Shown: positions 32,988 through 57,200 of the stretch, one piece after another | How the letters are laid out: every line of letters starts with the position of its first letter | Position numbering within the stretch: the stretch's first letter is position 1 | Virus record (IMG/VR): IMGVR_UViG_3300036770_007539 | Location: 237,008 to 301,007 of that record | Length of the DNA stretch: 64,000 nt | Direction: 5' to 3' (one strand) | Notes under the pieces: generated by a model | The model's input: the letters and a program-made list of their open reading frames with translations, nothing else | What the model was told of the DNA's origin: nothing | Database searches by the model: none | Position numbers and translations under genes: made by a program

Positions 32988-33116
32988 GGAGAGGATTGGT
33001 GGGAGTTGGTGCCAGAAGTAAATAAGAGCCATAAGTACGTTTACCCTGCTCGGGCGTCCGCTTCGACACGCCTGTCATCCCCCTCCATCGCTACCTGCCC
33101 CCTTTTGCCCCATTTC

Positions 33117-33258
33117 TTGACAATCTCTGGTTTGTTGCTATATATATGGTGTGACGACGAGACGAGACGAAACGAAACGCATCGCGAAACGATGCGAAAC
33201 GGAACGAATCGGCTCACGAACGACGCACGCTTGACAAGTGCCGGATCGGCGCTAGGAT
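33117..33258 (+). promoter_or_regulatory. Tandem sigma70-like promoters, unit 1
   Basis: TTGACA 33117-N16-TATATA; TTGACA 33231-N16-TAGGAT. Confidence 0.75.
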
Positions 33259-33340
33259 AGTGGTGTGGCGGATCGTCACGCCGTTGCCGGACGGATTCCG
33301 GTATCTCCCATGGGGGCAACGCCCCCGGAAAGGATCTCCC

Positions 33341-33634
33341 GTGTCAAAGGGAGCGATCCGTAGGAGAGCCCGTCGCTACAGGGAGCACGGGCTCTCCTTC
33401 ATCGTGCGCGTTCGGCTGGCGAAAGCCGCCGAACGCGCGATGAGCGACGAGGGCGGTCTCCGCGCCCTCGGCGCGGAGATGATCACGCATCGCACGTACA
33501 CAATGTGTACGTGCGATGCGTGCGACGAGTGGATCGCCGAGTGGAAGCTCGGCGATTTCACCATCAAAACCGACAGCGGATACATCGTATCCGCTGTCAA
33601 AAACCAACCCGTGCTCCCCTCTTCGGAGGGTTGA
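33341..33634 (+). CDS. Hypothetical protein
   Basis: AAAGGA RBS and GTG start; stop lies inside a repeat hairpin. Confidence 0.55.
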   Translation: MSKGAIRRRARRYREHGLSFIVRVRLAKAAERAMSDEGGLRALGAEMITHRTYTMCTCDACDEWIAEWKLGDFTIKTDSGYIVSAVKNQPVLPSSEG

Positions 33635-33642
33635 GCGCGGGT

Positions 33643-33701
33643 TGCGTCGCCAAGGTCCGCTTTCGAGCGGAGGGGGTTCGATTCCCCCGCGACGCACTAC
33701 C
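33643..33701 (+). ncRNA. Anticodon-less tRNA-like element 1
   Basis: TGCGTCGC/GCGACGCA stem; T-arm GGGGG-TTCGATT-CCCCC. Confidence 0.7.
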
Positions 33702-33761
33702 GCGCCAGACGGATTCTGGTGTTTCTCGAATGGGGGACATATGTCCCCGGAGGATAAGAGC

Positions 33762-34496
33762 ATGATGAAAAAGTACAATATTGCCGCGAAGTCCGCTCCC
33801 GCTCCCGCCCCCGCCGCCGCCCCCGTCGCCGCCGCCGTCCTCGCCGCCCCGGAGAACCCGGGCGTGTGGTTCGACCTCCACATCACGCGATTCAAAGAGG
33901 TGGGTTGCTCGGCTCGGGGCAACTTCGCGATGGTGCCGTCGGGCACCGTCGCGATCCTAGGGGCGAGCGACTACGAAGTCGGAGACGCCCTTTTGTCATA
34001 CGACTTCGATCGGGAGGGGCACACGCCCCTCAGCACCGCCCTCTCGCTCCGCATCTGGGCGGACCACACGTGGTGGGGAAAGGAATACCTCAAAGGCTGG
34101 GGCGCCGCCGCCCGCCGAAAGGCGGAGCGGATCTTGAACGACCTCGCGACGCCCGGTGGTAGCGACGAGGAGGACTACCCGGCATGGGTAGCTGCTGCAA
34201 AGCAGTATACTCTCTACTGCTTCCCCCCGTTCGACTTGTATCAGCGTATTCTTGTTGTGGAGTCTGACAGGTGCGGGTTCATAACCGCCCGCGTCGACGA
34301 GCAGCATCCGGATGAGAGCAAGCCCATGCACGGGGGCTGGCTGGTGCTTGCCCTTGCTCGAACGCAAGACCTGCCATCCAAGACCCGCCAAGCATGGGAG
34401 ATGTGCTCCCCGCTGTGGAGGGCGAGAGCCCTCGAATACATCCGTATGGTTGGATTTAAGGTTACGCCAGGAAGTTTCCTGGCTGATCTGGTCTGA
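33762..34496 (+). CDS. Hypothetical protein with an Ala/Pro-rich N-terminal linker
   Basis: RBS and ATG after a structured leader; 244 aa. Confidence 0.65.
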   Translation: MMKKYNIAAKSAPAPAPAAAPVAAAVLAAPENPGVWFDLHITRFKEVGCSARGNFAMVPSGTVAILGASDYEVGDALLSYDFDREGHTPLSTALSLRIWADHTWWGKEYLKGWGAAARRKAERILNDLATPGGSDEEDYPAWVAAAKQYTLYCFPPFDLYQRILVVESDRCGFITARVDEQHPDESKPMHGGWLVLALARTQDLPSKTRQAWEMCSPLWRARALEYIRMVGFKVTPGSFLADLV

Positions 34497-34538
34497 CCTG
34501 TCTCCCCCGCGCTCCCCTTCGGGGTCGAGCGCGGGGGC

Positions 34539-34611
34539 GTGCATCGCTTTGGAGTCTCGTTCCCCCGCAAGGGGGAACGAGGAGGGGGTTCGATTCCCTC
34601 ACGATGCACCA
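34539..34611 (+). ncRNA. Anticodon-less tRNA-like element 2
   Basis: GTGCATCG/CGATGCAC stem; TTCGATT T-loop; ends ACCA. Confidence 0.75.
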
Positions 34612-34898
34612 TGAGGAACATTCGTTCCTCCCGTTGTCGGACGGATTCCGGCTTCTCGTTGGGGCGCTCGCGCCGCCGAGCGGGAGGCGTTCCGCGCTTC
34701 CCTTCGCGGCGATGAGCGCCGTGAGGGGAATCGCGGTCGCCGCCTCGGCGACCGCGACGTCATCTGACCCATCTGCCCCTGGCTCCCCTCGCAAGAGGGT
34801 CGAGCCGGGGGCATCACCCCGAGGAACATTCGTTCCTCACCCTGACCGGAGGGTGTCCGGTGCTTCCAAGGGGATGAATGTCCCCGGAAAGGATTCTG

Positions 34899-35111
34899 AT
34901 GACCATCGGCGAGGCGGTCGACCGCCTCGTCTCGGAGGGGTACAACCCCGACCGAGACGACCTCCCCGCATGGGCAAAGGGGAAGGGGTTCCGACAGGAA
35001 CTCCGGACCCTCCCCTGCGGGGAGGAGTGCTGCGGGCAAGGGTACGCCCTTGTCCGCGGCAACGACGACGAGGAGGAGGAGCGGTTCATTCCGCTTCCTC
35101 CTCTCTTCTGA
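34899..35111 (+). CDS. Hypothetical protein with CGEECCG motif (paralog of 40796..41086)
   Basis: AAAGGA RBS; shared motif. Confidence 0.6.
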   Translation: MTIGEAVDRLVSEGYNPDRDDLPAWAKGKGFRQELRTLPCGEECCGQGYALVRGNDDEEEERFIPLPPLF

Positions 35112-35163
35112 GACTCGCCCCTGGCTCCCCTCGCAAGAGGGTCGAGCCGGGGGCATTTTTTCT

Positions 35164-35408
35164 GCGCTACATTGGCTATTTGGAGATCTAGTGTATTCGA
35201 AGCCGTACTATAAGAAATATTCTTCTTTCAATGACTTCTTTTTCTTTTCTCTTTTCCAAGAAAGAGGGGGGAGGGGGAGTCAATGAAAAAAAATCTTCTT
35301 TACAAGAGGCTTTACCTTTCTTTTTAGAGATCATGTTTCTTCGAAGCCAGTGCAGGTCTGACATTTCTAATCAATCGTTCGTTTTATTACTCTCTTGATA
35401 GCTAGGGC
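35164..35408. repeat. AT-rich spacer element 1
   Basis: GCGCTACATTGGCT ... AGCCAGTGCAG ... GCTAGGGC. Confidence 0.75.
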
Positions 35409-35433
35409 ATATTGTCGTGTTTGCGTGCGTAAC

Positions 35434-35535
35434 TTGACAAGTGATGGATCGTTGCTAGTATGTAGGGTGTGAGATGAACGCAAACGAGACAACGCAAGCG
35501 CGCTTGATTGACAAGCGGTGCAGCGGTGCTAGTAT
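35434..35535 (+). promoter_or_regulatory. Tandem sigma70-like promoters, unit 2
   Basis: TTGACA 35434-N16-TAGTAT; TTGACA 35508-N16-TAGTAT. Confidence 0.8.
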
Positions 35536-35819
35536 GCGGTCATCGAAGATTCGACGCAGCATAGGGGCGTCGAGACGAGCCGCCGTTAGCGGTGCTCTAA
35601 CAGAGCAGTCACGGGCTAGCCCGTGAATCGAGCCGGGCGATTCCCGGTGGTGAGCAAGGGATCTTGCGGCTTTGCCGGTTGAAGCCGCAAGATCCCTTGC
35701 CCTTGATAATCTGTGGAAGCTGTGCATAATGGTGTGCATGGCTTTGGGGGTCAATCCCCGCTTTGCCGGAGAGTGTCCGGTAACGTCCAAGGGGACGCAT
35801 GTCCCCGGAAAGGACTTTC

Positions 35820-36185: not shown

Positions 36186-36243
36186 CCCTTCTCTCCGCAT
36201 CGTTTCCTCCGCGCTCCCCTTCGGGGTCGAGCGCGGGGGAGGC

Positions 36244-36312
36244 TGCATCTTCTCGCTTGGAGGCGAGCGCCCCTTGCGGGGCGGACGGGTTCGATTCCCG
36301 TAGGATGTACCA
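36244..36312 (+). ncRNA. Anticodon-less tRNA-like element 3 (four-arm)
   Basis: TGCATCTT/AGGATGTA; GG-containing D-like loop; 4-nt-loop middle arm; ACGGG-TTCGATT-CCCGT; ends ACCA. Confidence 0.75.
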
Positions 36313-36380
36313 TGAGAGCTTGTCTCTCCCGCGTCGGACGGATTCCGATTGTCTGCGATCGAGAAAGGAGGACTGTCCAC

Positions 36381-36722
36381 ATGGCACAGTACCTCGGAAA
36401 CGCCTTCTCGCTCGGTATGCTCGATTGTCTCACGGCGGAAACGCCTGTGAGCGTCGAGTGTGCCGCCTTCACGCTCGACGAGGCACGCGCCTACGTCGAG
36501 CACAACCGCCCGACCTCGACGGTCGGGCACCTCGACACGGCGGAACTCTTCTCCGCCATGTTGGGGTCTTCCGTGGAGATGCGCCGCGTCTCCACGTCTC
36601 TGATCGGCGGGGATGAGATCCTCGTCGGTCAATACAACGGTCCGCGTCTTCCGGAGGGGGCGAAGAGCCTCCCCGAGGGCGCCAAGGTCCGCTGGATTCT
36701 GGCGCGCATCGTCGCGCGCTGA
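36381..36722 (+). CDS. acrIII-1: DUF1874 / AcrIII-1-like viral ring nuclease (anti-CRISPR type III)
   Basis: YLGNAFS, TLDEAR, STVGHLDTAELFSAMLG, EMRR, GDEIL, RLPEG match the STIV B116 / SIRV1 gp29 / YddF pattern. Confidence 0.8.
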   Translation: MAQYLGNAFSLGMLDCLTAETPVSVECAAFTLDEARAYVEHNRPTSTVGHLDTAELFSAMLGSSVEMRRVSTSLIGGDEILVGQYNGPRLPEGAKSLPEGAKVRWILARIVAR

Positions 36723-36881
36723 GGGTCCACACTCGCCCCTGGTTCCCCGCAAGGGTTGAGCCGGGGGCGTCCCTTCGGGGGAATATCTTTGGAAACTGCC
36801 TGCAAGTTCTGGCTTGTGGGCAGCTTCGAGGGATTGTCCCTTGACCGTAGCTAGGCGGACACCTAGCATCAGGAGGGTCAC

Positions 36882-37106
36882 ATGACTCTTCAAGAAGCAA
36901 TCCGAGAGGTCCGAGACCTTTCGGGAATCCCGGAGGAGCAGCTGCTCCGGGATTGGAACGAGAAGAAGTGCCAGTCTATGGACTGGCACTTCGACACCGA
37001 GACGGTCGAAGACCGTCTCGGAGAGTTGGTGACGTACTTCTACGTGGAAATCATCCCCGAAGGGGATGGTTTCCGCGTCAGGTCTCGAAAAGAGACCTGG
37101 CGATGA
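36882..37106 (+). CDS. Hypothetical protein
   Basis: AGGAGG RBS; 74 aa. Confidence 0.6.
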   Translation: MTLQEAIREVRDLSGIPEEQLLRDWNEKKCQSMDWHFDTETVEDRLGELVTYFYVEIIPEGDGFRVRSRKETWR

Positions 37107-37413
37107 GCCTCGCCCCCGCGTTCCCCTTCGGGGTCGAGCGCGGGGGCACTCGCGGGTTGAGCCGAAAGGTTCCCCGCTCTGACTTCAGGTGGCTCCGACG
37201 CTGATAACGGCGCGGGTTTGATACCCGCTGGAGGACACAGAACATCCTCCTAGCGAAAAGCCGCAGCGGGGAGTGCTTCCGATTCGGGTTACGGTGCAGG
37301 TTTGAGTCCTGCTCTCCCGCGTCACGGGGGTCGGTTGAGACGCCGCCGAACGGAAGCAACGCCTGATTGCAACAACAATAAAGGGGGCGCATATCCCCCG
37401 GAAAGGATATGGT

Positions 37414-38127
37414 TTGAGGACCATCTGCATCGGCGACATCCACGGATGTATCGCCGAGTTTCAAAAGCTCGTGGAGGTTCTCGCGCCCACGAGCGAGGAT
37501 CGGATCGTCCTGTTGGGCGATCTGATCGACAAGGGTCCAAAAAGCGCAGAAGTGGTTCGCTTCGCCCGCGAGATCGGAGCGACCACCATTCAGGGCAACC
37601 ACGAGGAGAAGGCTCTTCGATGGTTTGCCCACGAGAAGACTCGGATCGCCACGGGGAAGGCGAATCCGATGAGCCCTCCCGAGCACAAGGTTCGGGAGTG
37701 GAACACGATCCCCGCCGATGATCGGGAGTGGCTGGCAGCTGCTCCCGTTTACACGGATCTCGGCTCCGGGTTCCTCGCCGTTCACGGCGGGATGCTGCCC
37801 GGGGTCAAGCCACAAGATCACAAGAAGGGAATCCCCCTCCGCCTGAGGTTCGTCAACGACAAGGGCAAGTTTCTGCCCCTCGACGACGACCACGGCGATC
37901 CTGAGGGAGGTATCCCCTGGTACCAGGTCTACGATGGGGAGCACTCCCTGGTGGTGGGTCACACGGTTCACAGCCTGGAGTATCCCCGAATGGATCGTAT
38001 CGGGGATCGGGTGATCTGGCACCTGGACACGGGTTGCGTTCATGGTGGTCGCCTGACGGCGCTCATCCTGGAGACGCAAGAAGTCGTCCAGGTACAAGCG
38101 TCCCAAGTCTACAAGGCGCGGGACTGA
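37414..38127 (+). CDS. Calcineurin-like metallophosphoesterase (ApaH/PrpE/Pnkp-phosphatase-like)
   Basis: GDIHG, GDLIDKG, GNHE, HGG, GHT, LDTGCVHGGRLTA. Confidence 0.9.
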   Translation: MRTICIGDIHGCIAEFQKLVEVLAPTSEDRIVLLGDLIDKGPKSAEVVRFAREIGATTIQGNHEEKALRWFAHEKTRIATGKANPMSPPEHKVREWNTIPADDREWLAAAPVYTDLGSGFLAVHGGMLPGVKPQDHKKGIPLRLRFVNDKGKFLPLDDDHGDPEGGIPWYQVYDGEHSLVVGHTVHSLEYPRMDRIGDRVIWHLDTGCVHGGRLTALILETQEVVQVQASQVYKARD

Positions 38128-38447
38128 GGCGATTGGATTGTTCCTGCGTTCCCCGCAAGGGTTGAGCGCAGGAACAAGTTTCAAGAAGAAAGGAAGAGGA
38201 AGTGGAAATCTGTATGGTTTCGGGTTTTCCGACTCCTTGCGGGTGTTTTGCCTGCCAGGAGTCGGTGGAGCAGGCGCGCGGTGGCAACTGCCACTGCAGC
38301 GCCTGCTGCAAGGTTCGCTTCGGAAACGAAGCGAACGAAGCGAACGAAGGTTGCCGATGGGAGGCGGTTCGACCGCCTCGTCCTCGGCAGTAGGAATCGC
38401 CCCATCGCGTTCCCCCTTGCGGGGTCGAGCGCGATGGGGATTTTTCT

Positions 38448-38683
38448 GCGCTACATTGGCTATATCTGAGATCTTGACATATTCGTTGCTGATGCAGAAT
38501 CTTTTTTTCTTCAATGATTTTTCTTTTTTCTTTTCTACGGGAGGGAGAAACAAGAGAATCAATGAGCTAAGATATTCTTCAAAAGAAACGACTTGTCATT
38601 TATCTTTTACGAGATCAAACACATTCGGAGCCGATGCAGCTCTGATTCGTTTATCAAACGTTTGTTTAGTTCTCAGCTAGGGC
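38448..38683. repeat. AT-rich spacer element 2
   Basis: GCGCTACATTGGCT ... AGCCGATGCAGC ... GCTAGGGC. Confidence 0.75.
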
Positions 38684-38717
38684 TAGGGTGTTCGTTTCTG
38701 CGTGAATCTGTGCAGCC

Positions 38718-39200: not shown

Positions 39201-39307
39201 ACCGGGTAGAGCGAGCCCTCGCAAGGGGGCTCGTTCCCTACAACCGGATCTGGATCGTGATTGATCTAGGTTCGATTATAGGGATTACCCCTATTGAAAG
39301 GAGGAGC

Positions 39308-39621: not shown

Positions 39622-39687
39622 GCATCCCCTCGTGTGGTTGCGAGCACCTGAAAAGGTGGACAGGTTCGATTCCTGTGGGATGCACTA
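39622..39687 (+). ncRNA. tRNA-like element 4 (compact cloverleaf)
   Basis: GCATCCC/GGGATGC; CTCG-TGTGGTTG-CGAG; CACC-TGAAAA-GGTG; ACAGG-TTCGATT-CCTGT; ends ACTA. Confidence 0.75.
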
Positions 39688-40629: not shown

Positions 40630-40795
40630 TGTTCTAGATCGAATCCGTCCCATCGCGTTCCCCTTCGGGGTGAGCGCGATGGGGCGACCCTTCATGGGAA
40701 TATCTTTGGAAGCTACCTGCAAGTTTCTTGCAGGTAGCTTCGAGGGATTGTCCCTTGATTGAAACCAGGCAAATACCTGGTCTTTTGGAGGCATC

Positions 40796-41086: not shown

Positions 41087-41206
41087 CTTGGGAGGATCTT
41101 GGGGGAGTGGCAACGTTGCTGCTCCTCTTTCTGATGGTTCTCTTTGCGTGAAGTCCTGTCCGGGGCGAGGTTGAGCCGAAAGGTTCCCTCGTTCCGGGTC
41201 TTTTCT

Positions 41207-41479: not shown

Positions 41480-41595
41480 TTGACAAGTAGCTGATCGTTG
41501 CTAGTATGTAGGGTGTGAGAGGGAGAGTGTGAACGGAAACGCTAGCAAGCGCGAACGGGCTAGCGGTTGACAACGGCTCGAGCGTGGTGTATACT
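41480..41595 (+). promoter_or_regulatory. Tandem sigma70-like promoters, unit 4
   Basis: TTGACA 41480-N16-TAGTAT; TTGACA 41567-N17-TATACT. Confidence 0.8.
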
Positions 41596-41959: not shown

Positions 41960-42068
41960 GCCGGAATGGGCGAGCCCTTGCGGGCTCGTTCCCTGCAATC
42001 GGACCTGGATCGTCACTGATCTAGGTTCGACTCCAGGGAATCTTTCCTGGTCTTTCGGAGGTGTGTTT

Positions 42069-42530: not shown

Positions 42531-42632
42531 ACTAGGACGGGCGAGCCTGCAAGGGCTCGCTCCCTGCAATCGGGATTCGATACGGATCGAATCTCGATTC
42601 TAGGGAATGTCCCCTAGCAACATGGAGGCTTT

Positions 42633-44398: not shown

Positions 44399-44525
44399 CT
44401 GAATCGTAAGGGCGAGCCTCTTCGGGGGCTCGCTCCCTGCAATCGAATATTGACTCCCGGCATGTTCTGGGATACAGTCGATGTTCGATTCTAGGGAGTT
44501 TCCCCTAGTTTCTTCGGAGGAAAGC

Positions 44526-44735: not shown

Positions 44736-44788
44736 CCAATCTCAACACCTGGAGCATGTGTCTAAACTGCTCCTTTCCAAAGGAGAAT

Positions 44789-45189: not shown

Positions 45190-45237
45190 GGCTTGGGGAC
45201 GCATCTGGGGCTGAACGGTCCTGGGTGCGTCCCCGAA

Positions 45238-45522: not shown

Positions 45523-45649
45523 TTGACAATCGGCGGATCGTTGCTAGTATGTAGGGTGTGAGAGAGAGCACGAACGAACGAATGAACGAACGAACGCTAG
45601 CACGACGCTAGCGCGATGCGTTTGACGCGGCTCGATTCGATGCTACGTT
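45523..45649 (+). promoter_or_regulatory. Tandem sigma70-like promoters, unit 5
   Basis: TTGACA 45523-N16-TAGTAT; TTGACG 45622-N16-TACGTT. Confidence 0.75.
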
Positions 45650-46485: not shown

Positions 46486-46587
46486 TCTGGACGGGCGAGC
46501 CCGCAAGGGCTCGCTCCCTGCAATCGGGATTCGATACGGATCGAATCTCGATTCTAGGGAATGTCCCCTAGCAACGGAGGTATTGTG

Positions 46588-46908: not shown

Positions 46909-47018
46909 TATCCAGAACTAGGACGGGCGAGCCCGCAAGGGCTCGCTCCCTGCAATCGGGATTCGACACTTGTCGAGTTTCGATTCTAGGGAATGTCCCC
47001 TAGCACCAAGGAGGCTTT

Positions 47019-47270: not shown

Positions 47271-47389
47271 TAGGAAGGGCGAGCCCTCGCAAGGGGGCTC
47301 GCTCCCTGCAATCGAACCTTGATGCCGAAAACATCGGAGCTATGTCAAGGTTCGATTCTAGGGATGTCCCTAGTGTTACGGAGGTTTCC

Positions 47390-47848: not shown

Positions 47849-47902
47849 AACAACGCACCTGGGCATGTGTCTAAACTGCCCTTTTCTTGAAAGGAGAATG
47901 TC

Positions 47903-48400: not shown

Positions 48401-48461
48401 GCATCGACTGGTCCGCACCCGCAAGGGTGCGGAGGAGGTTCGATTCCTCCACGATGCACTA
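48401..48461 (+). ncRNA. Anticodon-less tRNA-like element 5
   Basis: GCATCG/CGATGC; CTGGT linker; GCAA hairpin; GGAGG-TTCGATT-CCTCC; ends ACTA. Confidence 0.75.
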
Positions 48462-48891: not shown

Positions 48892-48956
48892 CCGCACAGC
48901 CTCTCGGCTCGCCCTTCGGGGCGGGTCGGGAGGCTTTTTTTTTTGCGAAGAAGTAG

Positions 48957-49210: not shown

Positions 49211-49234
49211 AGAATACGTCTAAACGCACGCGAT

Positions 49235-49360
49235 TTGACAAGCGCAAGATCGTTGCTAGTATGTAGGGTGTGAGAACGAATGCGAACACGCAAACGCTCT
49301 CGTCGAGAGTAGCACGGCGCGATTGACAATGTTTGACAATCGCGGATTCGTGGCTACAAT
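49235..49360 (+). promoter_or_regulatory. Tandem sigma70-like promoters, unit 6
   Basis: TTGACA 49235-N16-TAGTAT; TTGACA 49333-N16-TACAAT. Confidence 0.8.
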
Positions 49361-49853: not shown

Positions 49854-49982
49854 TCGGGTGAGGGAGCGAGCCTTTAGGGGCTCGCTCCCTGTAACCGAGG
49901 GTTGACACCGAAAACATCGGATCTATGTCAATCTTCGGTTACAGGGAGCAATTCCGCTATCCTGTATTCTGGGAGTGTTTGC

Positions 49983-50655: not shown

Positions 50656-50802
50656 TCATCGACACGAGAGCGAGCCCTCGCAAGGGGCTCGCTCCCTGCA
50701 ATCGAACCTTGACGAGCACTTGTTGCTGTGATAACGTCAAGGTTCGATTCTAGGGGATTGACAATTCTGTGTGAGCTAACCTTTCCCTCAAAGGAGGTAT
50801 CA

Positions 50803-51293: not shown

Positions 51294-51333
51294 GAGCGAG
51301 TCCCTGGCAACGGGGGCTCGCTCCTTTTTTTTG
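51294..51333 (+). terminator. Rho-independent terminator
   Basis: GAGCGAG..CTCGCTC stem followed by a T tract. Confidence 0.7.
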
Positions 51334-51344
51334 TGGATTTTTCA

Positions 51345-51600: not shown

Positions 51601-51624
51601 ATGTTGCGCGTATGGGCGCACGAT

Positions 51625-51652
51625 TTGACAAGCGGGGGATCGTTGCTAGTAT
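51625..51652 (+). promoter_or_regulatory. Sigma70-like promoter, unit 7
   Basis: TTGACA-N16-TAGTAT. Confidence 0.8.
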
Positions 51653-51806: not shown

Positions 51807-52232
51807 ATGTTCAAGTTCGATTTTTCCGCCGTCCACAACGCTGTTGTTTCGCTCGTCGATGCTGCAAACCACCGCGTTCCGGTGGAGGGGCTTTCCAAGG
51901 ATTTGAAGGTTGCGGGATTCGATCTGGGTGAGGACGCGGACGTGGTTATCCGCGCAATTTGCGCGGCGTCTACGGTCGTGGATTTGCGGGCGGGTCGTTC
52001 TGGCGGCGTTGGTCGAAAGGAGTGGTTTAAGGGCGGGGCTAATCCTGAGCCTACGGGTGTGGGTGCAAAGATCGCCAAATCCATTCGTGAAACCGCTGGA
52101 ATTTCTCTTCCCAAGGGTGATGAGCGTTCGGCTTCTCTGGCAATTGCGAACGCATATCTGGAGGCATTGGCGACTGGAAAATGCGATCCAATGCCGCTGG
52201 CGGAGGTAATCAAGAAGTTCGGCAAGAGCTGA
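51807..52232 (+). CDS. Promoter-proximal protein (paralog of 49398..49853)
   Basis: Shared motifs as listed for 49398..49853. Confidence 0.75.
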   Translation: MFKFDFSAVHNAVVSLVDAANHRVPVEGLSKDLKVAGFDLGEDADVVIRAICAASTVVDLRAGRSGGVGRKEWFKGGANPEPTGVGAKIAKSIRETAGISLPKGDERSASLAIANAYLEALATGKCDPMPLAEVIKKFGKS

Positions 52233-52510
52233 AAAGCCAAGGGTTTGCGGTAATCCCATAAAACCGCTCATAGCTTGCCAACTAGAGTCCTTTCCATTAA
52301 CGTAAGTGGCGGATACGTCCTGTTTTTGGTGTAAATGGTCGCTCTATTATTAGAGTAGTTGGCGCACCTGGGTAAGTGTATAAACTGCCTTTTTCCGGCG
52401 AGGCGATTACCTATCAAATCGTCGGAACCAAAACTAAAAAGTTAGAATAACTGGGCTGGCTATTTTTATAATAGCTGGTCTTAGATACTCTCGACAAAAG
52501 AGGAAAAGTC

Positions 52511-52957
52511 ATGAAACAAATTTTGGACGTTGAGGATTTCACCTTTTCTCTCGAGCCGGATCGGTATGAGATTCTGAGTCTAAAAGGTGCAAATCTCTAC
52601 GAAGATCGAAACATCTGGCTTGAAAAAGCGGAAAATGGGGAAGGTTGGGATGTATTCATTACTTACCGACCGGAAGATGACGATAACCGTGGCAGCTACA
52701 ATCCTGTGGGATTGAATCGATCCTGGGCTAAAAAGTTCAAGACTGAAATGCAGGAAGATCAGGATGGTGAGGTTAAACCCTGGAATATGGGCAGTAATCT
52801 GACCACGGATGAAGTTAAGGGAATGGTTCGATATTTCCGCCGAACGGCATTGGTGGGGATATTGCGAGCCAAGCGGGATCGTGAGTGTTACGGTGAGGAT
52901 TTGGAAAAGGAGAAGTGGGACAATTACTGGGCGGGTGAGGGATATTCTGGGTATTGA
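52511..52957 (+). CDS. Hypothetical protein (paralog of 47390..47848)
   Basis: Long shared blocks. Confidence 0.75.
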   Translation: MKQILDVEDFTFSLEPDRYEILSLKGANLYEDRNIWLEKAENGEGWDVFITYRPEDDDNRGSYNPVGLNRSWAKKFKTEMQEDQDGEVKPWNMGSNLTTDEVKGMVRYFRRTALVGILRAKRDRECYGEDLEKEKWDNYWAGEGYSGY

Positions 52958-53083
52958 GGGTAAACACCTGGGTAAGTGTTAAAACTGCCTTTTTCCCTAG
53001 GATGCGATTACCTATCAATTCCTAGGGACCAAACAATCAGAAAAACCAATAACTGAGTGTTTTTCGGAACAAGGAGAAATCAA

Positions 53084-53395
53084 ATGACCTTGCATTATCT
53101 CATGGCGGAATATGTTGATTCTCAATCGTACATGCACAATAACAGCGAAGTTATTGGTGGTCCTGGGTATAAGGAAAAGCAAAAGAGGCATTTGCGAGCC
53201 TGCAAAAAGCTCCAGGAATACGTCATGAACAATCTTCCCGCTGAAGATAACTTCAGCATTTACAATGGGGAAACCGAGGAGCGTCTAGTTTCTTTAATTA
53301 AGGAAACTGGGGAAGAACTATTTTACTCGAACGCTTCATGCGGCACGCGAATCTGTAGGGATAAGTTTGGGTTGGTTTATGTATTCGGCGTGTAA
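53084..53395 (+). CDS. Hypothetical protein
   Basis: AAGGAG RBS. Confidence 0.6.
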   Translation: MTLHYLMAEYVDSQSYMHNNSEVIGGPGYKEKQKRHLRACKKLQEYVMNNLPAEDNFSIYNGETEERLVSLIKETGEELFYSNASCGTRICRDKFGLVYVFGV

Positions 53396-53410
53396 TAGAA
53401 GGAGAGAATC

Positions 53411-53566
53411 ATGAACGAACGTGTTAGGTTGATTCGTCGAAAGCTCATTGATTACACTTCGGAATCCGAGGAATTCAAGGATTTCTATTTGGTGATTGAG
53501 GGTCAAAAGCTGACATTCAGCAGAGCCGGTGAGACGATCGAAATCAACATCGAAGAAAAGAGTTGA
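53411..53566 (+). CDS. 51 aa protein (paralog of 54441..54611)
   Basis: MNE.V.L...QKLT...E.IEINI.EKS; hand-translated. Confidence 0.6.
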   Translation: MNERVRLIRRKLIDYTSESEEFKDFYLVIEGQKLTFSRAGETIEINIEEKS

Positions 53567-53675
53567 AGTTTACACCTGGACAAGTGGATAAACTGTCTTT
53601 TCCTAATGGTGAGATTACCTATCAATCCATTAGGACCAAACAATCAGAAAAACCAATAACTGAGAGGTTATCATC

Positions 53676-54170
53676 ATGGCAATGGCAAATGTTCGTGGTT
53701 ATGTGGTTGAGTCCGAAGATTCTGATAACGAGGATTCGGATCGCGAGGATTCGGATAACGAGATCAAGGCAGAAATCCGAAGGGAAATGATTGCCAAGCT
53801 CGCGAGGGAATGGAATCAAATCAATAACCGAATCGAAATCGAAAGTTTCGATGATGAGCTTCAAGGTCAAAGGGCGGATTATCATGCCGAAATGGCAGAT
53901 GAATACGTCCAAAACTGTCTTTATGGGCTTTTCAAGGAAAAGCCCAATGTAACTCCAGAGGAAAAGGCGGCTTTCATTGAAAAAGCCCAAAACGAATATT
54001 ACAAGAAAGTTTCCCAAGAGGAAAACAAGATTTATCTGCAGAAGCAGGTAATCGAGGAGCTTTTGGGAAATTTGGGTGCTCGAATGATGCGTCCTTATGA
54101 GCATCATAACGAGATGGAGGGTTATTACCGATATATGGAAAACCGATACAACAATGATCGGGATTGGTAA
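53676..54170 (+). CDS. Acidic coiled-coil protein (paralog of 45684..46157)
   Basis: Shared C-terminus. Confidence 0.7.
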   Translation: MAMANVRGYVVESEDSDNEDSDREDSDNEIKAEIRREMIAKLAREWNQINNRIEIESFDDELQGQRADYHAEMADEYVQNCLYGLFKEKPNVTPEEKAAFIEKAQNEYYKKVSQEENKIYLQKQVIEELLGNLGARMMRPYEHHNEMEGYYRYMENRYNNDRDW

Positions 54171-54234
54171 TAACTGAACAAACACCTAGGGTAAGTGTAT
54201 AAACTGCCCTTTTCCTAAAGGTTGGAGGTGCGAT

Positions 54235-54426
54235 ATGGGTTACGACATGAATCTCGGAAACATAAACTTCGAGAATATGGTAAAGCGAACGGCTCAAATG
54301 CTTTCCTTTGAGGTTTCCGTGGAGGATATTCGCGAAGCCCTAATCGCAGAAGGTTGCACGGAGGAGCAAGCGTATTTTGTTTATATTGCGGCAAAGTTGC
54401 TTCTTCGCGAGCCTGCAAACCCTTGA
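54235..54426 (+). CDS. Hypothetical protein
   Basis: GGAGG RBS. Confidence 0.6.
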   Translation: MGYDMNLGNINFENMVKRTAQMLSFEVSVEDIREALIAEGCTEEQAYFVYIAAKLLLREPANP

Positions 54427-54440
54427 AATAGGAGGAAATC

Positions 54441-54611
54441 ATGAATGAAAAGGTCAAACTTCTTCTCGAGAAAATCGTAGATTTCGTTACCTTGGAATCC
54501 GAGGATTTCGAGGACTACGACCTAATATGGGATAACCAAAAGGAACTTCAAAAGCTGACATTAATCGGTGCCAGCGAGAAGATCGAAATCAACATCCAAG
54601 AAAAGAGTTGA
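54441..54611 (+). CDS. 56 aa protein (paralog of 53411..53566)
   Basis: AGGAGG RBS; hand-translated. Confidence 0.6.
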   Translation: MNEKVKLLLEKIVDFVTLESEDFEDYDLIWDNQKELQKLTLIGASEKIEINIQEKS

Positions 54612-54698
54612 GGTTTACACCTAGGGTAAGTGTATAAACTACCCTTGTATAAACTGCCCTTTTCTTCATAAACCTTTCAAAGCAGAGGAAAAAAAGTC

Positions 54699-54974
54699 AT
54701 GAAGATCAGTTTTTGTCATCCCAGGAGCGCACACAAAACTGTTTACTTTTTTTTCGGTCGCCACAATGTTAGGGCTGGCTTTACAGTAAAGGATTCTAAC
54801 GGTTATCTGCCAATGATCCACTTTGGTTTCAATGAAAAAAGCGGGGATATTCGCTTGGGTGTGAGCTTTCAAAGTTACTTGATTTTGAAAGAGCGATTAC
54901 CCGTCTTGGCAGATGGAATCATGAAAGTTCAGAACAAGGCGAGAAAGTTGATTGATACTCGCTGGAAAGATTGA
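54699..54974 (+). CDS. Hypothetical protein
   Basis: 91 aa ORF. Confidence 0.55.
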   Translation: MKISFCHPRSAHKTVYFFFGRHNVRAGFTVKDSNGYLPMIHFGFNEKSGDIRLGVSFQSYLILKERLPVLADGIMKVQNKARKLIDTRWKD

Positions 54975-55025
54975 TCAGCTAAAAGCTGAAGTTTGACACC
55001 TAAGCATGTGTATAAACTGCTTTAC

Positions 55026-55098
55026 GGGTCCATAACTCAATTGGTAGAGTAGCTGGCTTTTAACCAGTTTGTTGGCAGTTCGACCCTGCCTGGACCCA
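55026..55098 (+). tRNA. trnK: tRNA-Lys(UUU)
   Basis: GGGTCCA/TGGACCC acceptor; anticodon loop CTTTTAA; GGCAG-TTCGACC-CTGCC. Confidence 0.9.
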
Positions 55099-55246
55099 CA
55101 AAGAAAAAGACAAATCTAAAAGAGGAAAACATGAAAATCCTGGTATTGAACGATTCTGCGGAGGAGATTCTTTTGGCATTGAAGCCATAGATTGAAAACA
55201 CGGTTACATGCACAAGTAACTTCCTCAAACATTTGAGGGATGGAAA

Positions 55247-55966
55247 ATGAAAGCAAGAATCCTAAGTGACCTACATTTTGAGTTTTCTCAAGACCAAGGA
55301 AAGGATTTTATTGCCAATCAAAACGATTCGGACTATGATCTTTTGATTTTGGCAGGCGATATTGCTCCTGTAGGAATCTTGCTGTCTGTTTTCCAGAAGT
55401 TTCGGAAAGCGGCTGGCAATCGACCTATTGTATTCGTTCCCGGCAATCATGAATATTATCATTCCAGCTTGGAAGAAGCTAACAATATCTTCTCTCAGCT
55501 TGATGAGATTCATGTTTTGAACGGAAATGTTGTCAATATCGGGGATGTGCGAATTGTGGGAACTACCTTGTGGTTTCCTCATTCTGGAATGATGCAAGCC
55601 TCTGATTATCAAATCAATGATTTCCATAAGATTTCTGATTTGAATCAGTGGCTAAATCACCGATCTAGGTGGGAGGCTAACTTCCTAAATCAAAACATCC
55701 AAGAGAATGACATAGTGGTAACTCATTATCTGCCTTGTTATGACTCGGTGGATGATAAGTTCAAGAACAGCAATCTCAACAAATACTTTGTTCATAACGT
55801 AAAGCCTTTGGTTGAGGATTGCGGAGTTAAACTTTGGGTTCATGGTCATACCCATTCTTCTGTGGATTACACTTTGGGTTCTACCAGGGTGGTTTGTAAT
55901 CCCTGTGGATATCCTGGGCATGATTTGAATCTGAACTTTAACAACCGCCTAACCATTGATCTTTAA
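55247..55966 (+). CDS. Calcineurin-like metallophosphoesterase
   Basis: LSDLHFE, LAGDI, VPGNHEYY, VTHYLP, WVHGHTH, VVCNP.GY. Confidence 0.9.
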   Translation: MKARILSDLHFEFSQDQGKDFIANQNDSDYDLLILAGDIAPVGILLSVFQKFRKAAGNRPIVFVPGNHEYYHSSLEEANNIFSQLDEIHVLNGNVVNIGDVRIVGTTLWFPHSGMMQASDYQINDFHKISDLNQWLNHRSRWEANFLNQNIQENDIVVTHYLPCYDSVDDKFKNSNLNKYFVHNVKPLVEDCGVKLWVHGHTHSSVDYTLGSTRVVCNPCGYPGHDLNLNFNNRLTIDL

Positions 55967-56062
55967 TGACATGGTGGCAATGTCTTAGGTTCCCACTTAT
56001 CCTATAAAAGTGGAAGTTTCTCCTATTACCCAAAACACACCCATTAACAAACAAAGGTAAAT

Positions 56063-56482
56063 ATGAACAAAGCAGCTTCTTTGTACGATTCGGCAGCAAA
56101 CCTTATTTCCGCCAAAGCCGTTTATTGGCTTAATAACCATCGTTTGCAACTCCTGAATCTTAAGAATAGCGAAATTACCCGACGTTTGAGCAGTTACAAT
56201 ATGGGTTGGATTTCGGCTATCTCGATTCTCGAGCATTTTAGCTTTCTTCAATCCTTGGACGAAGAATTCATGAATCATCGGGAATATCAAATTCTGTGTG
56301 ATTCCTGGTTTGCTTCTCATGATGCAGCTTTGGTTGAATGGGCAAAGATGGAATTTGAGCAATTGGCTCAAGTTGCAAAGGAAGATATGGAGGGAATTAC
56401 TAAAGACTCAATTTCCCCCCGAGCCGCACAACAGCTTTTTGATACAGTTCGCATCAGAAACTTTAAGGGTCTGGCTGCGTAA
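56063..56482 (+). CDS. Hypothetical protein
   Basis: 139 aa ORF. Confidence 0.6.
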   Translation: MNKAASLYDSAANLISAKAVYWLNNHRLQLLNLKNSEITRRLSSYNMGWISAISILEHFSFLQSLDEEFMNHREYQILCDSWFASHDAALVEWAKMEFEQLAQVAKEDMEGITKDSISPRAAQQLFDTVRIRNFKGLAA

Positions 56483-56546
56483 AGGTAAAGATTCACCTGG
56501 GCATGTGGATAAACTGCCCTTTCCCCCAACATAAAAACGAGGCTTT

Positions 56547-56726
56547 ATGAACAACGATTCTACTCAGTTTCAGTTTACTTGCTGTGATTCTTGTTTTCAG
56601 AAGTCTGTTTGTACCGTTCATTATTACAACGGTATTCCTGTAATTGCTACCTGCAAAACCTGCGATCTTCGTGCCTTCCAAAATAAGGCTTCTCAGCAAA
56701 TCAATCAATGGCTAATCGGTAAGTAA
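56547..56726 (+). CDS. 59 aa Cys-rich protein
   Basis: CCDSC..C..CKTC; hand-translated. Confidence 0.5.
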   Translation: MNNDSTQFQFTCCDSCFQKSVCTVHYYNGIPVIATCKTCDLRAFQNKASQQINQWLIGK

Positions 56727-56736
56727 AGATAAAACC

Positions 56737-56922
56737 ATGCGTAATTACCAAGAATCCCTCAATCGTTTGATTTGTGACATGACTTCTCTAAAGCGCGTTT
56801 ATGAGTGTACGCATCCAAAGACAAATGATACTTTTGTGGAATTGGTGGAGGATAACGTAACCACTCGATATCGTTGGGATATTGAAGATGGGTTTATATC
56901 TTGCGGCGAAGTTTTATTTTGA
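56737..56922 (+). CDS. Hypothetical protein
   Basis: 61 aa ORF. Confidence 0.5.
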   Translation: MRNYQESLNRLICDMTSLKRVYECTHPKTNDTFVELVEDNVTTRYRWDIEDGFISCGEVLF

Positions 56923-56934
56923 AGGTTGAAGGGC

Positions 56935-56962
56935 TTGACAAGAAAATTTCCCGTGTTATGTT
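56935..56962 (+). promoter_or_regulatory. Sigma70-like promoter
   Basis: TTGACA-N16-TATGTT with extended TG. Confidence 0.7.
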
Positions 56963-57080
56963 AGCTTGGTTGGCGGATATCCCTAAACCGCCCGTTTAAT
57001 ATCAAAAGCCTACAAGAAGGATATTAAATGTAAATTTGACTTGTGGGCAGACCTGGGTAAGTCTAAAACTGCCCTTTAAT

Positions 57081-57164
57081 GTCGCTGTGGTGGAATCGGC
57101 AGACACGATTGACTCAAAATCAATTGATAGTAATATCGTATCAGTTCAAGTCTGATCAGCGACA
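57081..57164 (+). tRNA. trnL: tRNA-Leu(CAA)
   Basis: GTCGCTG/CAGCGAC; ATTGA-CTCAAAA-TCAAT; long variable arm; TTCAAGT T-loop. Confidence 0.9.
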
Positions 57165-57200
57165 CAAATTCTCAAGTAACCCAATCCAAAGGATAAAGCA

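Follow-up and report, generated by a model that had tools for sequence, protein, structure and literature searches.

Predicted structured RNA cassettes between small, putatively early genes of a 301-kb phage genome

To characterize the intergenic regions of a 301-kb phage genome, we analyzed a 64,000-nucleotide window at the end of an IMG/VR phage contig (IMGVR_UViG_3300036770_007539, positions 237,008 to 301,007; window coordinates are used throughout). Between 33.1 and 57.5 kb the window carries about 52 co-oriented small genes arranged in seven units, each opened by an AT-rich spacer plus tandem sigma70-type promoters and closed by a stem-loop. Apart from AcrIII-1, a PNK-like kinase and two phosphoesterases, the products of these genes have no recognizable function. 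The AcrIII-1/DUF1874 assignment is marginal in the window itself (Pfam, 26.3 bits against a cut-off of 26), although its homologue in the relative L060 carries PF08960 (L-numbers are our handles for other contigs used in the comparison; L010, L060 and L064 are independent contigs from other samples). Genuine tRNA genes are interspersed with the ORFs in the same orientation, here and in relatives. The features of the region are collected in Table 1.

Table 1. Predicted features of the 33.1-57.5 kb region, in window coordinates.
Position	Strand	Feature	Remarks
33117..33144	+	Unit 0 first promoter	TTGACA, spacer, TATATA-type -10
33231..33258	+	Unit 0 second promoter	10/12
35434..35461	+	Unit 1 promoter P1	TTGACA-16-TAGTAT with TG
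35508..35535	+	Unit 1 promoter P2	
38718..38745	+	Unit 2 promoter P1	
38846..38875	+	Unit 2 promoter P2	Weaker
41480..41507	+	Unit 3 promoter P1	
41567..41595	+	Unit 3 promoter P2	11/12
45523..45550	+	Unit 4 promoter P1	
45623		Unit 4 second promoter	
49235..49262	+	Unit 5 promoter P1	
49333..49360	+	Unit 5 promoter P2	11/12
51625..51652	+	Unit 6 promoter P1	
35117..35165	+	Unit 0 closing stem-loop plus U-run	Stem 100% identical to the internal stem-loop at 34775-34814, which has no U-run
38400..38447	+	Unit 1 closing stem-loop plus U-run	
41160..41206	+	Unit 2 closing stem-loop	Short U-run
45196..45236	+	Unit 3 closing stem-loop	No U-run
48898..48945	+	Unit 4 intrinsic terminator	17 bp, T10
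51294..51332	+	Unit 5 intrinsic terminator	
35166..35433	+	AT-rich spacer	GCGCTACATTGGCT box at left end, imperfect inverse at right end; equivalent spacers 38448-38717, 41207-41479, 45237-45522, 48946-49234, 51333-51624
33644..33699	+	tRNA-like element TL1	7-bp acceptor, T arm, UUCG-capped stem in place of the anticodon arm, A-CUA tail; Rfam subthreshold tRNA-Sec/mascRNA
34541..34611	+	tRNA-like element TL2	A-CCA tail; z -5.6
36245..36312	+	tRNA-like element TL3	D-like arm with GG, A-CCA tail; upstream of AcrIII-1
39622..39687	+	tRNA-like element TL4	D-like arm, A-CUA tail
48401..48461	+	tRNA-like element TL5	A-CUA tail; z -4.8
37148..37330	+	Structured gap	Two degenerate T-arm-like hairpins (UUUGAUA, UUUGAGU loops)
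33606..33645	+	Type A 3' stem-loop	Abuts TL1
34500..34538	+	Type A 3' stem-loop	3 nt before TL2
34775..34814	+	Type A 3' stem-loop	Internal, no U-run
36202..36240	+	Type A 3' stem-loop	4-5 nt before TL3
36735..36768	+	Type A 3' stem-loop	Precedes the first type C module
37109..37147	+	Type A 3' stem-loop	
38140..38175	+	Type A 3' stem-loop	
40147..40186	+	Type A 3' stem-loop	Precedes a type C module
40647..40685	+	Type A 3' stem-loop	Precedes a type C module
36769..36871	+	Type C module (long composite stem plus hairpins)	Other copies 40187-40284 and 40686-40786; z -5.3, -4.0, -10.3
33287..33326	+	5' hairpin pair (CCGGA..UCCGG, then GGGG..CCCC abutting the SD)	Further copies 33705-33748, 34846-34885, 35766-35806, 39693-39734; single hairpins 36336-36352, 37383-37399, 40264-40279
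39209..39295	+	Type B module	3' stem-loop, short inverted repeat, CUAGGG-type hairpin
41969..42050	+	Type B module	Short inverted repeat
42539..42617	+	Type B module	Short inverted repeat
44410..44508	+	Type B module	Embedded promoter-like TTGACT-17-TACAGT
46493..46571	+	Type B module	Short inverted repeat
46925..47003	+	Type B module	Short inverted repeat
47277..47373	+	Type B module	Weak promoter-like TTGATG-16-TATGTC
49862..49946	+	Type B variant	TTGACA-16-TATGTC; no 5' hairpin
50666..50755	+	Type B module	TTGACG-17-TAACGT (TG-extended), same form as in relatives
44746..44772	+	D3 pseudoknot	
47856..47881	+	D3 pseudoknot	
52365..52390	+	D3 pseudoknot	Followed by D3b hairpin 52393-52427
52965..52990	+	D3 pseudoknot	Followed by D3b hairpin 52994-53028
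53573..53598	+	D3 pseudoknot	Followed by D3b hairpin 53601-53635
54183..54209	+	D3 pseudoknot	
54618..54644	+	D3 pseudoknot	A partial second copy follows, to 54666
54997..55022	+	D3 pseudoknot	Ends 3 nt before tRNA-Lys
56494..56519	+	D3 pseudoknot	
57050..57074	+	D3 pseudoknot	GAC/GUC variant of stem 1; upstream of tRNA-Leu
52241..52267	+	E element, a second H-type pseudoknot	GGG-UUU-GCGG-UAAU-CCC-AUAAAA-CCGC; second copy 57418-57452; topology by reading
55026..55099	+	Genuine tRNA-Lys(UUU)	Embedded among the small ORFs; no encoded CCA
57081..57165	+	Genuine tRNA-Leu(CAA)	36 nt before the next start codon; no encoded CCA
36381..36722	+	AcrIII-1 / DUF1874 (STIV B116-like) gene	phrog_5063; homologues in relatives

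A preliminary description of this region, made from the sequence alone, had proposed that almost every intergenic gap contains members of a small kit of folded RNA elements in fixed order, and our analysis confirms this observation: the elements are present, all on the + strand, and exceed chance expectation. Of the 52 gene junctions, 7 are unit boundaries, 9 are tight or overlapping (15 nt or less, with no element) and 36 are gaps of 53 nt or more, such that "almost every gap" refers to the long gaps. Of these 36, 33 carry recognizable kit members, and a 34th (50244-50316) holds a perfect hairpin of the same style. The order of the elements is never violated. In type A gaps a 3' stem-loop is followed by a tRNA-like element, a CCGGA hairpin, a GGGG/CCCC hairpin and the SD; in type B gaps a 3' stem-loop is followed by a CCCUGCAAUCG linker plus long inverted repeat, a CUAGGG hairpin and the SD; in type C gaps a 3' stem-loop is followed by a long composite stem and the SD; and type D gaps contain (the E pseudoknot), the D3 pseudoknot, (the D3b hairpin) and the SD, in that order. 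The tRNA mimics occur in only five gaps, plus two degenerate copies, all in the GC-rich block.

The units are delimited by conserved promoters, and a scan for such sites found 24 promoter-like sequences against 9.8 +/- 2.8 in shuffled sequence, with the 11 best all on the + strand. The AT-rich spacers, of about 270 nt, are flanked by a 14-nt box (GCGCTACATTGGCT) and its imperfect inverse (10-14 of 14 positions by reading, although an exact-seed scan did not list the pair), and the closing stem-loops carry a U-run in 5 of 6 cases. The gaps are also more strongly folded than coding controls of the same length, with median MFE z-scores of -3.8 and -1.7, respectively (Mann-Whitney p = 6e-4). Several coding stretches in the GC-rich block nevertheless fold as strongly as the gaps, so a low MFE alone says little there. 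Base-pair covariation and the folds of individual copies, on the other hand, support selection on the folds of the five anticodon-less tRNA-like elements, the nine copies of the long inverted repeat and the ten or eleven copies of the 26-nt H-type D3 pseudoknot.

Because GC content jumps from 0.30-0.45 to 0.50-0.66, we considered whether the GC-rich block (33-52 kb) could be a mis-assembled piece of another genome, and regard this as very unlikely. The D3 pseudoknot and paralogous genes occur on both sides of the GC boundary, the boundary lies inside unit 6 with no break, and L010, L060 and L064 show the same mix of GC-rich genes, AT-rich spacers and low-GC D3 genes.

The five tRNA-like elements maintain 6-7 of 7 acceptor pairs and 5 of 5 T-stem pairs, an invariant UUCGAUU loop with G53-C61, a GG in the D region and a discriminator A, while their stems are entirely different between copies but always paired and capped by UUCG, GCAA, GAAA or UUGC. 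A stable stem-loop ends 0-5 nt upstream of TL1-3, and a hairpin begins 1-6 nt downstream. The acceptor and T arms are of ordinary phage-tRNA type, as the same 3' pattern hits real tRNAs in 48 other viral contigs, and the region carries counter-defense-like genes (AcrIII-1, the PNK-like kinase and the phosphoesterases), which raises the possibility that the elements act in trans, after excision or in place, as decoys or sponges for tRNA-directed host defenses or for tRNA-modifying and CCA-adding enzymes, or that they are decaying tRNA pseudogenes with no role in mRNA punctuation. We consider these readings unlikely: the anticodon arm is replaced by a tetraloop-capped stem in all five, so they cannot decoy anticodon nucleases, pseudogenes would not keep perfect pairing with wholly different stem sequences, and each element sits at the same place in the cassette order. 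The elements are absent from all six related loci recovered, which leaves them without comparative support, and they could be a recent private expansion.

In contrast to the preliminary description, which counted the pseudoknot among the processing-like modules of this region, D3 is a pan-phage element tied to the upstream stop codon and behaves like a 3'-end element, with at least 186 instances in IMG/VR and no Rfam match. Both stems covary, and 90 of 96 non-canonical stem-1 variants are fully complementary. D3 starts 6-7 nt after a stop codon in 56 instances and never closer than 5 nt, and 52% of instances lie within 15 nt of an ORF end, against 3.6% of random positions. It ends 2-7 nt, mostly 3 nt, before a tRNA in 13 IMG/VR instances from other phages, and 3 nt before tRNA-Lys here and in L009 and L010.

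The long stems had likewise been regarded as processing-like modules, but the type B stem, which covaries, is an inverted repeat that embeds a sigma70-like -35/-10 pair in 7 of 7 copies in relatives and in 4 of 9 copies in the window (11 of 16 distinct copies). Many cistrons therefore probably have their own promoter, as in the T4 PeSLs (PMC2839356), and are not simply cut from a long transcript; internal promoters would make processing unnecessary for many of them. It is thus possible, though we consider it less likely than the model below, that the cassettes are purely transcriptional, with stem-loops acting as attenuators or terminators, promoters re-initiating transcription gene by gene, no endonucleolytic punctuation, and the tRNA-like elements being just another kind of stable attenuating structure. 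In line with this reading, a further promoter-type module sits directly upstream of genes in L010, the same stem-loop family serves as a terminator when followed by a U-run, D3 is followed by U3-5 in this phage family, and PeSL stem-loops have been shown to attenuate transcription (PMC2839356). However, internal stem-loops lack U-runs, and five type B copies, all type A and type C modules and D3 have no usable promoter. Moreover, an invariant canonical T-loop, a D-region GG and a 7-bp acceptor with an A-C(C/U)A tail are not needed for attenuation, and D3 keeps a pseudoknot stem that a terminator does not need.

Relatives carry the same genes in different orders with the same cassettes between them, and a 95% identical 284-nt single-gene cassette has unrelated flanks, which supports the proposed shuffling of genes. 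The breakpoints of this cassette fall in the intergenic modules, one of them at a GGYTCGAT remnant, and a conserved ATAGCCAAT-type box in the spacers looks like a DNA site. These observations could also indicate that the repeats work at the DNA level only, as recombination sites, cruciforms or protein-binding palindromes, with RNA folding a by-product, but we consider this unlikely: all elements are strand-specific and co-oriented with the genes, G-U pairs are tolerated, the arm spacing of the type B repeat varies from 4 to about 30 nt, and D3 is a pseudoknot with fixed spacing to stop codons and tRNAs, which only makes sense in RNA.

The earlier interpretation, in which long early transcripts are cut by several host ribonucleases into individually protected mRNAs while the repeats allow shuffling of cargo such as AcrIII-1, is therefore supported only in part. 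Our preferred explanation, held with moderate confidence, is that this is the hyperplastic early (host-takeover) region of a phage that one structural protein links distantly to T4-like cyanomyoviruses, and that host sigma70-RNA polymerase most likely reads seven units of 2-4 kb from strong tandem promoters. In this view, each small gene is wrapped in a structured cassette that would insulate and stabilize its message, with a stable tetraloop-capped stem-loop or small pseudoknot just past the stop codon and a hairpin abutting the Shine-Dalgarno sequence of the next gene. Where a tRNA or an anticodon-less tRNA-like element lies between the two, host RNase P and RNase Z would excise it, such that the upstream message would end in the stem-loop or pseudoknot with only 0-5 nt of tail and the downstream message would begin with its 5' hairpin. 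Where the type B inverted repeat lies between them, a new transcript could start from the embedded promoter, while read-through RNA would instead form a 19-26 bp duplex. The conserved cassette sequences would also be the crossover points at which single-gene cassettes are exchanged between related phages. The folds, their covariation and order, the promoter-like content and the shuffled gene order are demonstrated by the sequences, whereas the identity of the polymerase, every cleavage (by RNase III, P or Z) and the early timing are inferred, the polymerase and the timing from promoter similarity only. Excision of the genuine tRNAs from these transcripts must already occur, given their position among co-oriented ORFs, but two of the five tRNA-like elements encode CCA, which blocks RNase Z in known systems.

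Taken together, the anticodon-less tRNA-like elements look new, and the D3 pseudoknot is an RNA part found widely in other phages, while the type B modules resemble the promoter/stem-loop cassettes of T4, the PeSLs, more than dedicated RNase III sites, and the proposed exchange of single-gene cassettes at conserved intergenic sequences follows what has been shown for T4 PeSLs (PMC2839356, PMC4122927).

To place the small-gene region in its genomic context, we first searched for relatives of the 301,007-bp viral contig IMGVR_UViG_3300036770_007539, of which the window is the last 64 kb. A megablast of the region against 50,697 deposited phage genomes returned no close relative, exact-motif scans of IMG/VR for the unit promoter and for the linker of the type B module recovered only the source contig, and protein-guided searches yielded only the source contig in IMG/VR and one metagenome contig, with no homologue found for a 244-aa ORF early in the region. 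The left part of the window encodes virion proteins, including collagen-like and Laminin_G fibre proteins and a 593-aa structural protein about 31% identical to one of T4-like cyanomyoviruses. Composition is strikingly uneven, with a GC content of 0.30-0.45 in most of the window but 0.50-0.66 between 33.1 and 52.2 kb. Strand composition is also extreme to the left of the small genes: the + strand has only 6-8% G over 29950-32450, where the genes lie on the - strand so that their sense strand is C-poor, followed by a 500-nt tract with 4% C made of about 24 copies of an 11-nt repeat (GATAGAATAGG), and the asymmetry flips at about 32480, just left of the first putative early promoter.

Using Shine-Dalgarno (SD)-guided starts, we placed about 52 small co-oriented ORFs on the + strand. 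These fall into seven units delimited by a highly conserved sigma70-like promoter (TTGACA, 16 nt, then TAGTAT with an upstream TG), present as a variant at the first unit, and a second promoter lies 75-115 nt downstream in six of the seven units, none being found after 51625. A promoter scan recovered 24 promoter-like sites, compared with 9.8 +/- 2.8 in shuffled sequences, and the 11 best are all on the + strand. Units end in a stem-loop, which carries a U-run in five of six cases and is followed by a 14-nt box, an AT-rich spacer of about 270 nt, an imperfect inverse copy of the box (10-14 of 14), a GCTAGGGC motif and the promoters. The pairing of the two boxes rests on our reading of the alignment, as an exact-seed inverted-repeat scan did not recover it. 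The spacers contain short ATG-started, Phe/Ser/Leu-rich reading frames around a conserved TTCAATGA box, one of which gives a chance-level Rfam match to a Phe leader (E = 1.1). The stem-loop that closes the first unit (unit 0) is 100% identical to an internal one that lacks the U-run, and the same hairpin family would therefore serve as a terminator or as an internal 3' structure depending only on its tail; no internal stem-loop has a U-run.

Coordinates of features in the window (and, where indicated, in other loci)
Positions	Feature	Remarks
1319-2245, 23355-24629, 24632-29921	UvdE UV-endonuclease, a glycosyltransferase-methyltransferase fusion, and three collagen-repeat or Laminin_G_3 fibre-like proteins on the - strand	
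29950-33010	Region of extreme strand composition	
33117/33231	Variant of the unit promoter	
33644-33699	tRNA-like element TL1	
33762-34496	244-aa ORF	
34541-34611	tRNA-like element TL2	
34775-34814	Internal stem-loop without U-run	
35117-35156	Stem-loop closing unit 0	
35209-35290	Short reading frames in AT-rich spacer	
35434	Unit promoter	
36245-36312	tRNA-like element TL3	
36381-36722	AcrIII-1/DUF1874 gene	Middle strongly folded
36882-37106	ORF	Middle strongly folded
37107-37413	307-nt gap	Two degenerate T-arm-like hairpins
37414-38127	Calcineurin-like phosphoesterase	
38214-38393	ORF	Middle strongly folded; may be an RNA rather than a protein gene
38505-38575	Short reading frames in AT-rich spacer	
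38718	Unit promoter	
39622-39687	tRNA-like element TL4	
41480	Unit promoter	
42069-42530	PNK-like P-loop kinase	
42633/47019	Paralogous genes	
43172-43455	284-nt single-gene segment	95% identical in relative L010
45305-45335	Short reading frames in AT-rich spacer	
45523	Unit promoter	
45684/53676	Paralogous genes	32% amino-acid identity
47390/52511	Paralogous genes	66% amino-acid identity
48401-48461	tRNA-like element TL5	
49235	Unit promoter	
49398/51807	Paralogous genes	44% amino-acid identity
51625	Unit promoter	
52241-52267	Element E	
55026-55099	Genuine tRNA gene	
55247-55966	Calcineurin-like phosphoesterase	
57081-57165	Genuine tRNA gene	
57418-57452	Element E	
59107-59400	tRNA-Leu(UAA) gene split in its anticodon loop	Missed by ARAGORN
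59131-59336	Group I intron found by Rfam	
L010 8110-8140	Element E in relative L010	
L167, about 12095-12122	D3 in Clostridium phage phiCT19406B	Record positions

Of the 52 gene junctions, 7 are unit boundaries, 9 are tight or overlapping and 36 are gaps of 53 nt or more, and 33 of these 36 contain members of four cassette types, always in the same order. Type A consists of a bipartite GC-rich stem-loop, a tRNA-like element, a CCGGA..UCCGG hairpin and a GGGG..CCCC hairpin abutting the SD; type B of a GCGAGCC..GGCUCGC stem-loop, a long inverted repeat, a CUAGGG..CCCUAG hairpin and the SD; type C (three copies) of a type A stem-loop, a long composite stem (12 bp plus an extension) and the SD; and type D, found mostly in the low-GC part, of a 26-nt element (D3), sometimes preceded by element E and followed by hairpin D3b, and then the SD. 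The gaps fold far better than shuffled sequences (median z -3.8) and better than coding controls (median z -1.7; p = 6e-4), although some GC-rich ORFs are themselves extremely structured, and the middles of three of them fold with z-scores of -7.6 to -9.6, as strongly as the intergenic modules. The preliminary description, which reported a small kit of RNA elements in fixed order in almost every intergenic gap, is therefore borne out as an observation, and the feature is real and well supported.

Each of the five tRNA-like elements folds on its own into a 7-bp acceptor stem, a 5-bp T stem with the invariant loop UUCGAUU and the G53-C61 pair, a D region with GG (a real D-like hairpin in two copies), and a perfectly paired stem capped by UUCG, GCAA, UUGC or GAAA where the anticodon arm should be, followed by discriminator A and then CCA (two copies) or CUA (three copies). 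Because MAFFT could not align the 5' halves of the elements, the helices were tabulated per copy rather than in a covariance model; the stems differ completely between copies yet always pair, and the T stem shows G-C/A-U and G-C/C-G exchanges. Neither ARAGORN nor the Rfam tRNA model (RF00005) calls these elements, and the best Rfam hits fall below threshold, namely tRNA-Sec (23.7-26.8 bits against a gathering score of 47) and mascRNA (26.7 bits against 42.5), the latter an RNase P/Z-processed tRNA mimic. Only two loci in the window qualify as genuine tRNA genes by these methods, in addition to an intron-split tRNA-Leu(UAA), a type of gene that is typical of cyanobacteria and hence a hint about the host. 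The genuine tRNAs of this phage lack an encoded CCA, and the intron-split one ends A-CUA, like three of the mimics. The 3' acceptor/T pattern of the elements is that of ordinary phage tRNAs, as a search of IMG/VR with this pattern hit ordinary tRNAs almost exclusively, the four exceptions being odd tRNAs or noise and not anticodon-less elements. Their geometry is consistent: a type A stem-loop ends 0-5 nt before TL1-3, TL4 and TL5 start 6 and 10 nt after a stop codon, and a hairpin starts 1-6 nt after the tail. None of the six related loci examined has such elements, or any type A or type C part.

For the type B modules, we aligned eleven copies, eight of the nine in the window and three from the relative L010. 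Cells are 92% paired, and the long stem is 97% paired with compensatory changes at 5 of 14 pairs. Folding from the conserved linker shows that the real helix is longer, 19-26 bp, and runs from CCCUR-C-AAUCG to CGAUU-C-UAGGG (a CCCUR/YAGGG extension), giving an intercistronic imperfect duplex of about two helical turns as in RNase III processing sites of the T7 type. The repeat also contains a sigma70-like promoter, with the -35 (TTGACn) in the 5' arm, followed by 16-17 nt, and the -10 (TAACGT, TAGAGT or TACAGT) in the 3' arm, in all seven distinct copies from relatives and in four of nine window copies, two of them weak, and a GC-rich stem-loop lies upstream. A transcript started there would begin a few nucleotides before the CUAGGG hairpin. 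This is what Arbiol et al. described as PeSLs (promoter-early stem-loops), composite promoter/stem-loop cassettes with the stem-loop between or over the -35/-10 boxes that flank ORFans and mediate modular shuffling (PMC2839356; PMC4122927). The five short copies keep the inverted repeat without a promoter, so the pairing itself seems to be kept, and type A, type C and D3 likewise lack a promoter. In the relatives L008 and L009, a further repeated intergenic motif, GAATCGATTGATTGGTGCGATAC, lies directly upstream of SD sequences at several sites and looks like an extended -10 promoter (TGcGATACT).

To assess gene shuffling, we recovered relatives through two conserved proteins (loci L008, L009, L010 and L060-L065; one 8.8-kb and one 5.9-kb relative had no retrievable DNA). 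These share type B modules, D3, E, the spacer box and tandem TTGACA promoters, but they carry homologues of window genes in different orders, as seen in L010, L060, L063 and L064. In L010 and L060, for example, the AcrIII-1 homologue sits next to the AAA_33 kinase, whereas their counterparts in the window lie in units 1 and 3. A 284-nt segment holding one gene is 95% identical between L010 and the window while its flanks are unrelated, and its downstream breakpoint falls in a remnant of the type B repeat. Within the window, four pairs of paralogous genes exist in a GC-rich and an AT-rich version on either side of the composition boundary, which suggests repeated import of cassettes from relatives with a different base composition. 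Most of the cargo has no family. AcrIII-1/DUF1874 just passes the Pfam cut-off, and the PNK-like P-loop kinase and the two calcineurin-like phosphoesterases (NinI-like) also match parts of a multidomain RNA-ligase PHROG, so they may have RNA-repair or counter-defence functions. The anti-defence cargo proposed in the preliminary description is thus established for one gene and plausible for a few.

The D3 element is a pan-phage pseudoknot. Ten or eleven copies in the window plus eight from relatives give a hairpin that is 99% paired, with compensatory changes at 5 of 6 pairs, and a second, 3-bp helix lies between the 5' flank (CAC) and the loop (GUG), making D3 an H-type pseudoknot with a conserved NNUAAAC third loop; in this family the second helix shows one double change. 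A scan of IMG/VR found the motif in more than 100 unrelated contigs, and a relaxed scan gave at least 165-186 distinct instances, in which the short helix covaries massively, with 5' flank/loop combinations of CAC/GTG (69 instances), GTC/GAC (35), GAC/GTC (26), GTG/CAC (8), GAG/CTC (7), CTC/GAG (4) and others (16). Of 96 non-canonical instances, 90 are fully complementary. The element usually occurs once per contig (loci L066-L254), but a 361-kb contig (L105, L118) has at least five copies. BLAST of D3 against cultured phages gave only an intergenic copy in Clostridium phage phiCT19406B and a copy in a crAss-like phage inside an annotated tmRNA. No Rfam family, preQ1 included, was hit at E of 10 or less on 52230-55030, at E of 5 or less on 33-58 kb, or in 20 other D3-bearing loci, and neither a literal sequence search nor topical searches of the literature found the element, a catalogue of 8,495 IMG/VR candidates (PMC10690425) lying outside this comparison. 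A plain sigma70 or T4-late promoter was considered because of the TATAAA/TAAACT core and a TTGACA 4 nt upstream in one phage group, but was rejected as the whole story because both pseudoknot stems covary. A DnaA box, a sigma54 site, a T7-type promoter, a pistol or hammerhead ribozyme and a preQ1-I aptamer were considered by reading; none fits, in agreement with the Rfam searches. D3 is followed by U3-5 here, but in only 28 of 186 instances elsewhere.

The position of D3 is informative: 52% of instances start within 15 nt of the end of an open frame of at least 60 codons, against 3.6% of random positions, with a spacing that peaks sharply at 6 nt (39 instances) and 7 nt (17) and is never below 5. 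Moreover, 13 instances from other phages end 2-7 nt, mostly exactly 3 nt, before a tRNA 5' end, and the same holds for tRNA-Lys here and in L009 and L010. D3 is therefore tied to the end of the upstream gene, and we infer from the ribosome footprint that it sits as close as a terminating ribosome would allow without unwinding it; where a tRNA follows, it would be left with a 3-nt tail after RNase P cleavage. Element E has the same pseudoknot topology (stem 1 GGG/CCC or AGG/CCU, stem 2 NCGG/CCGN, A-rich third loop), with covarying stems among copies by our reading. It also occurs in other viral contigs (L358, L364, L366, L375, L380 and L386), often followed by a U-run, lies 4 nt before tRNA-Leu in L010, and is not in Rfam.

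Collectively, the analysis demonstrates the elements, their order, their selected folds and their strand specificity, host-type promoters at unit starts and inside many type B modules, and shuffled cassettes among relatives, whereas we infer that the block is early, that excision of tRNAs and tRNA-like elements by RNase P/Z makes structured, tail-less 3' ends and hairpin-led 5' ends, that the type B duplex is cut in read-through RNA, that the promoters and terminators are active as such, and that the cassettes are the crossover sites. The earlier interpretation, in which long early transcripts are cut by several host ribonucleases into individually protected mRNAs and the repeats allow shuffling, is partly supported, being right in outline but too uniform, as the kit mixes PeSL-like promoter cassettes, probable processing elements and a general phage pseudoknot. 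The strongest argument for processing-coupled end protection is the recurring pattern of a stable structure, then 0-5 nt, then a tRNA shape, which appears with two unrelated structures (D3 and the type A stem-loop) and with both real and mock tRNAs.

A bolder reading, which we regard as possible but unlikely, is that phages use an RNase P-coupled way of making protected mRNA ends, in which a compact structure (either D3, as a new widespread RNA class, or a tetraloop stem-loop) sits as close to the stop codon as a terminating ribosome allows and is followed within 0-5 nt by a tRNA or a tRNA-derived anticodon-less element. Excision of the tRNA shape would leave the upstream message with a structured, tail-less 3' end, a bacterial and viral counterpart of MALAT1/mascRNA, and in this phage the tRNAs would have been reduced to pure punctuation marks. 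If the proposed organization holds, it shows how a giant phage expresses dozens of tiny accessory and counter-defence genes at individually set levels from a few promoters, and how these genes travel between phages with their expression signals attached. The anticodon-less elements would be, to our knowledge, the first case of tRNA-like mRNA punctuation in a phage, and the abundance of D3 across unrelated phages, its fixed placement after stop codons and, in several phages, before tRNAs, and its lack of an Rfam match make it testable at once. All of these elements are small, modular parts of the kind that synthetic biologists build by hand as insulators.

Several known systems share parts of this organization. 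D3 and E have the topology and size of small H-type pseudoknots with an A-rich third loop, such as the preQ1-I riboswitch aptamer and the recoding pseudoknots placed 6-8 nt after a slippery or stop codon, and the spacing of D3 is that at which a structure touches the mRNA entry site of a terminating ribosome; unlike a riboswitch, however, D3 occurs after unrelated genes and before tRNAs. tRNA punctuation, plant mitochondrial t-elements (PMC1920247) and MALAT1/mascRNA likewise involve tRNA-shaped elements without decoding function between or after messages, where RNase P/Z cleavage would define mRNA ends, with a protective structure immediately upstream of the predicted RNase P site as in MALAT1, although literature searches turned up no phage case. 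The early region of phage T7 has tandem strong host-type promoters (A1-A3), a polycistronic early transcript, structured intercistronic RNase III sites whose cleavage leaves a protective 3' hairpin, and one terminator (TE), but here the pattern is repeated seven times, the duplexes double as predicted promoters, and any RNase III cleavage is inferred. The PeSL cassettes of T4-type phages (PMC2839356; PMC4122927) are also repeated intergenic cassettes that combine a sigma70-like promoter with a stable stem-loop, are concentrated in hyperplastic regions full of ORFans, flank single genes and are used as crossover points, so that related phages carry the same genes in different arrangements. In contrast, more than half of the cassettes here have no promoter, they are built from several unrelated structured families (tRNA-like elements, pseudoknots and composite stems), and AT-rich upstream regions exist only at unit boundaries. 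Taken together, the region is best placed with the PeSL-type modular early regions as a richer form, from which it differs by two parts that look new, the putative tRNA-like punctuation elements and the D3 (and E) post-stop pseudoknots.
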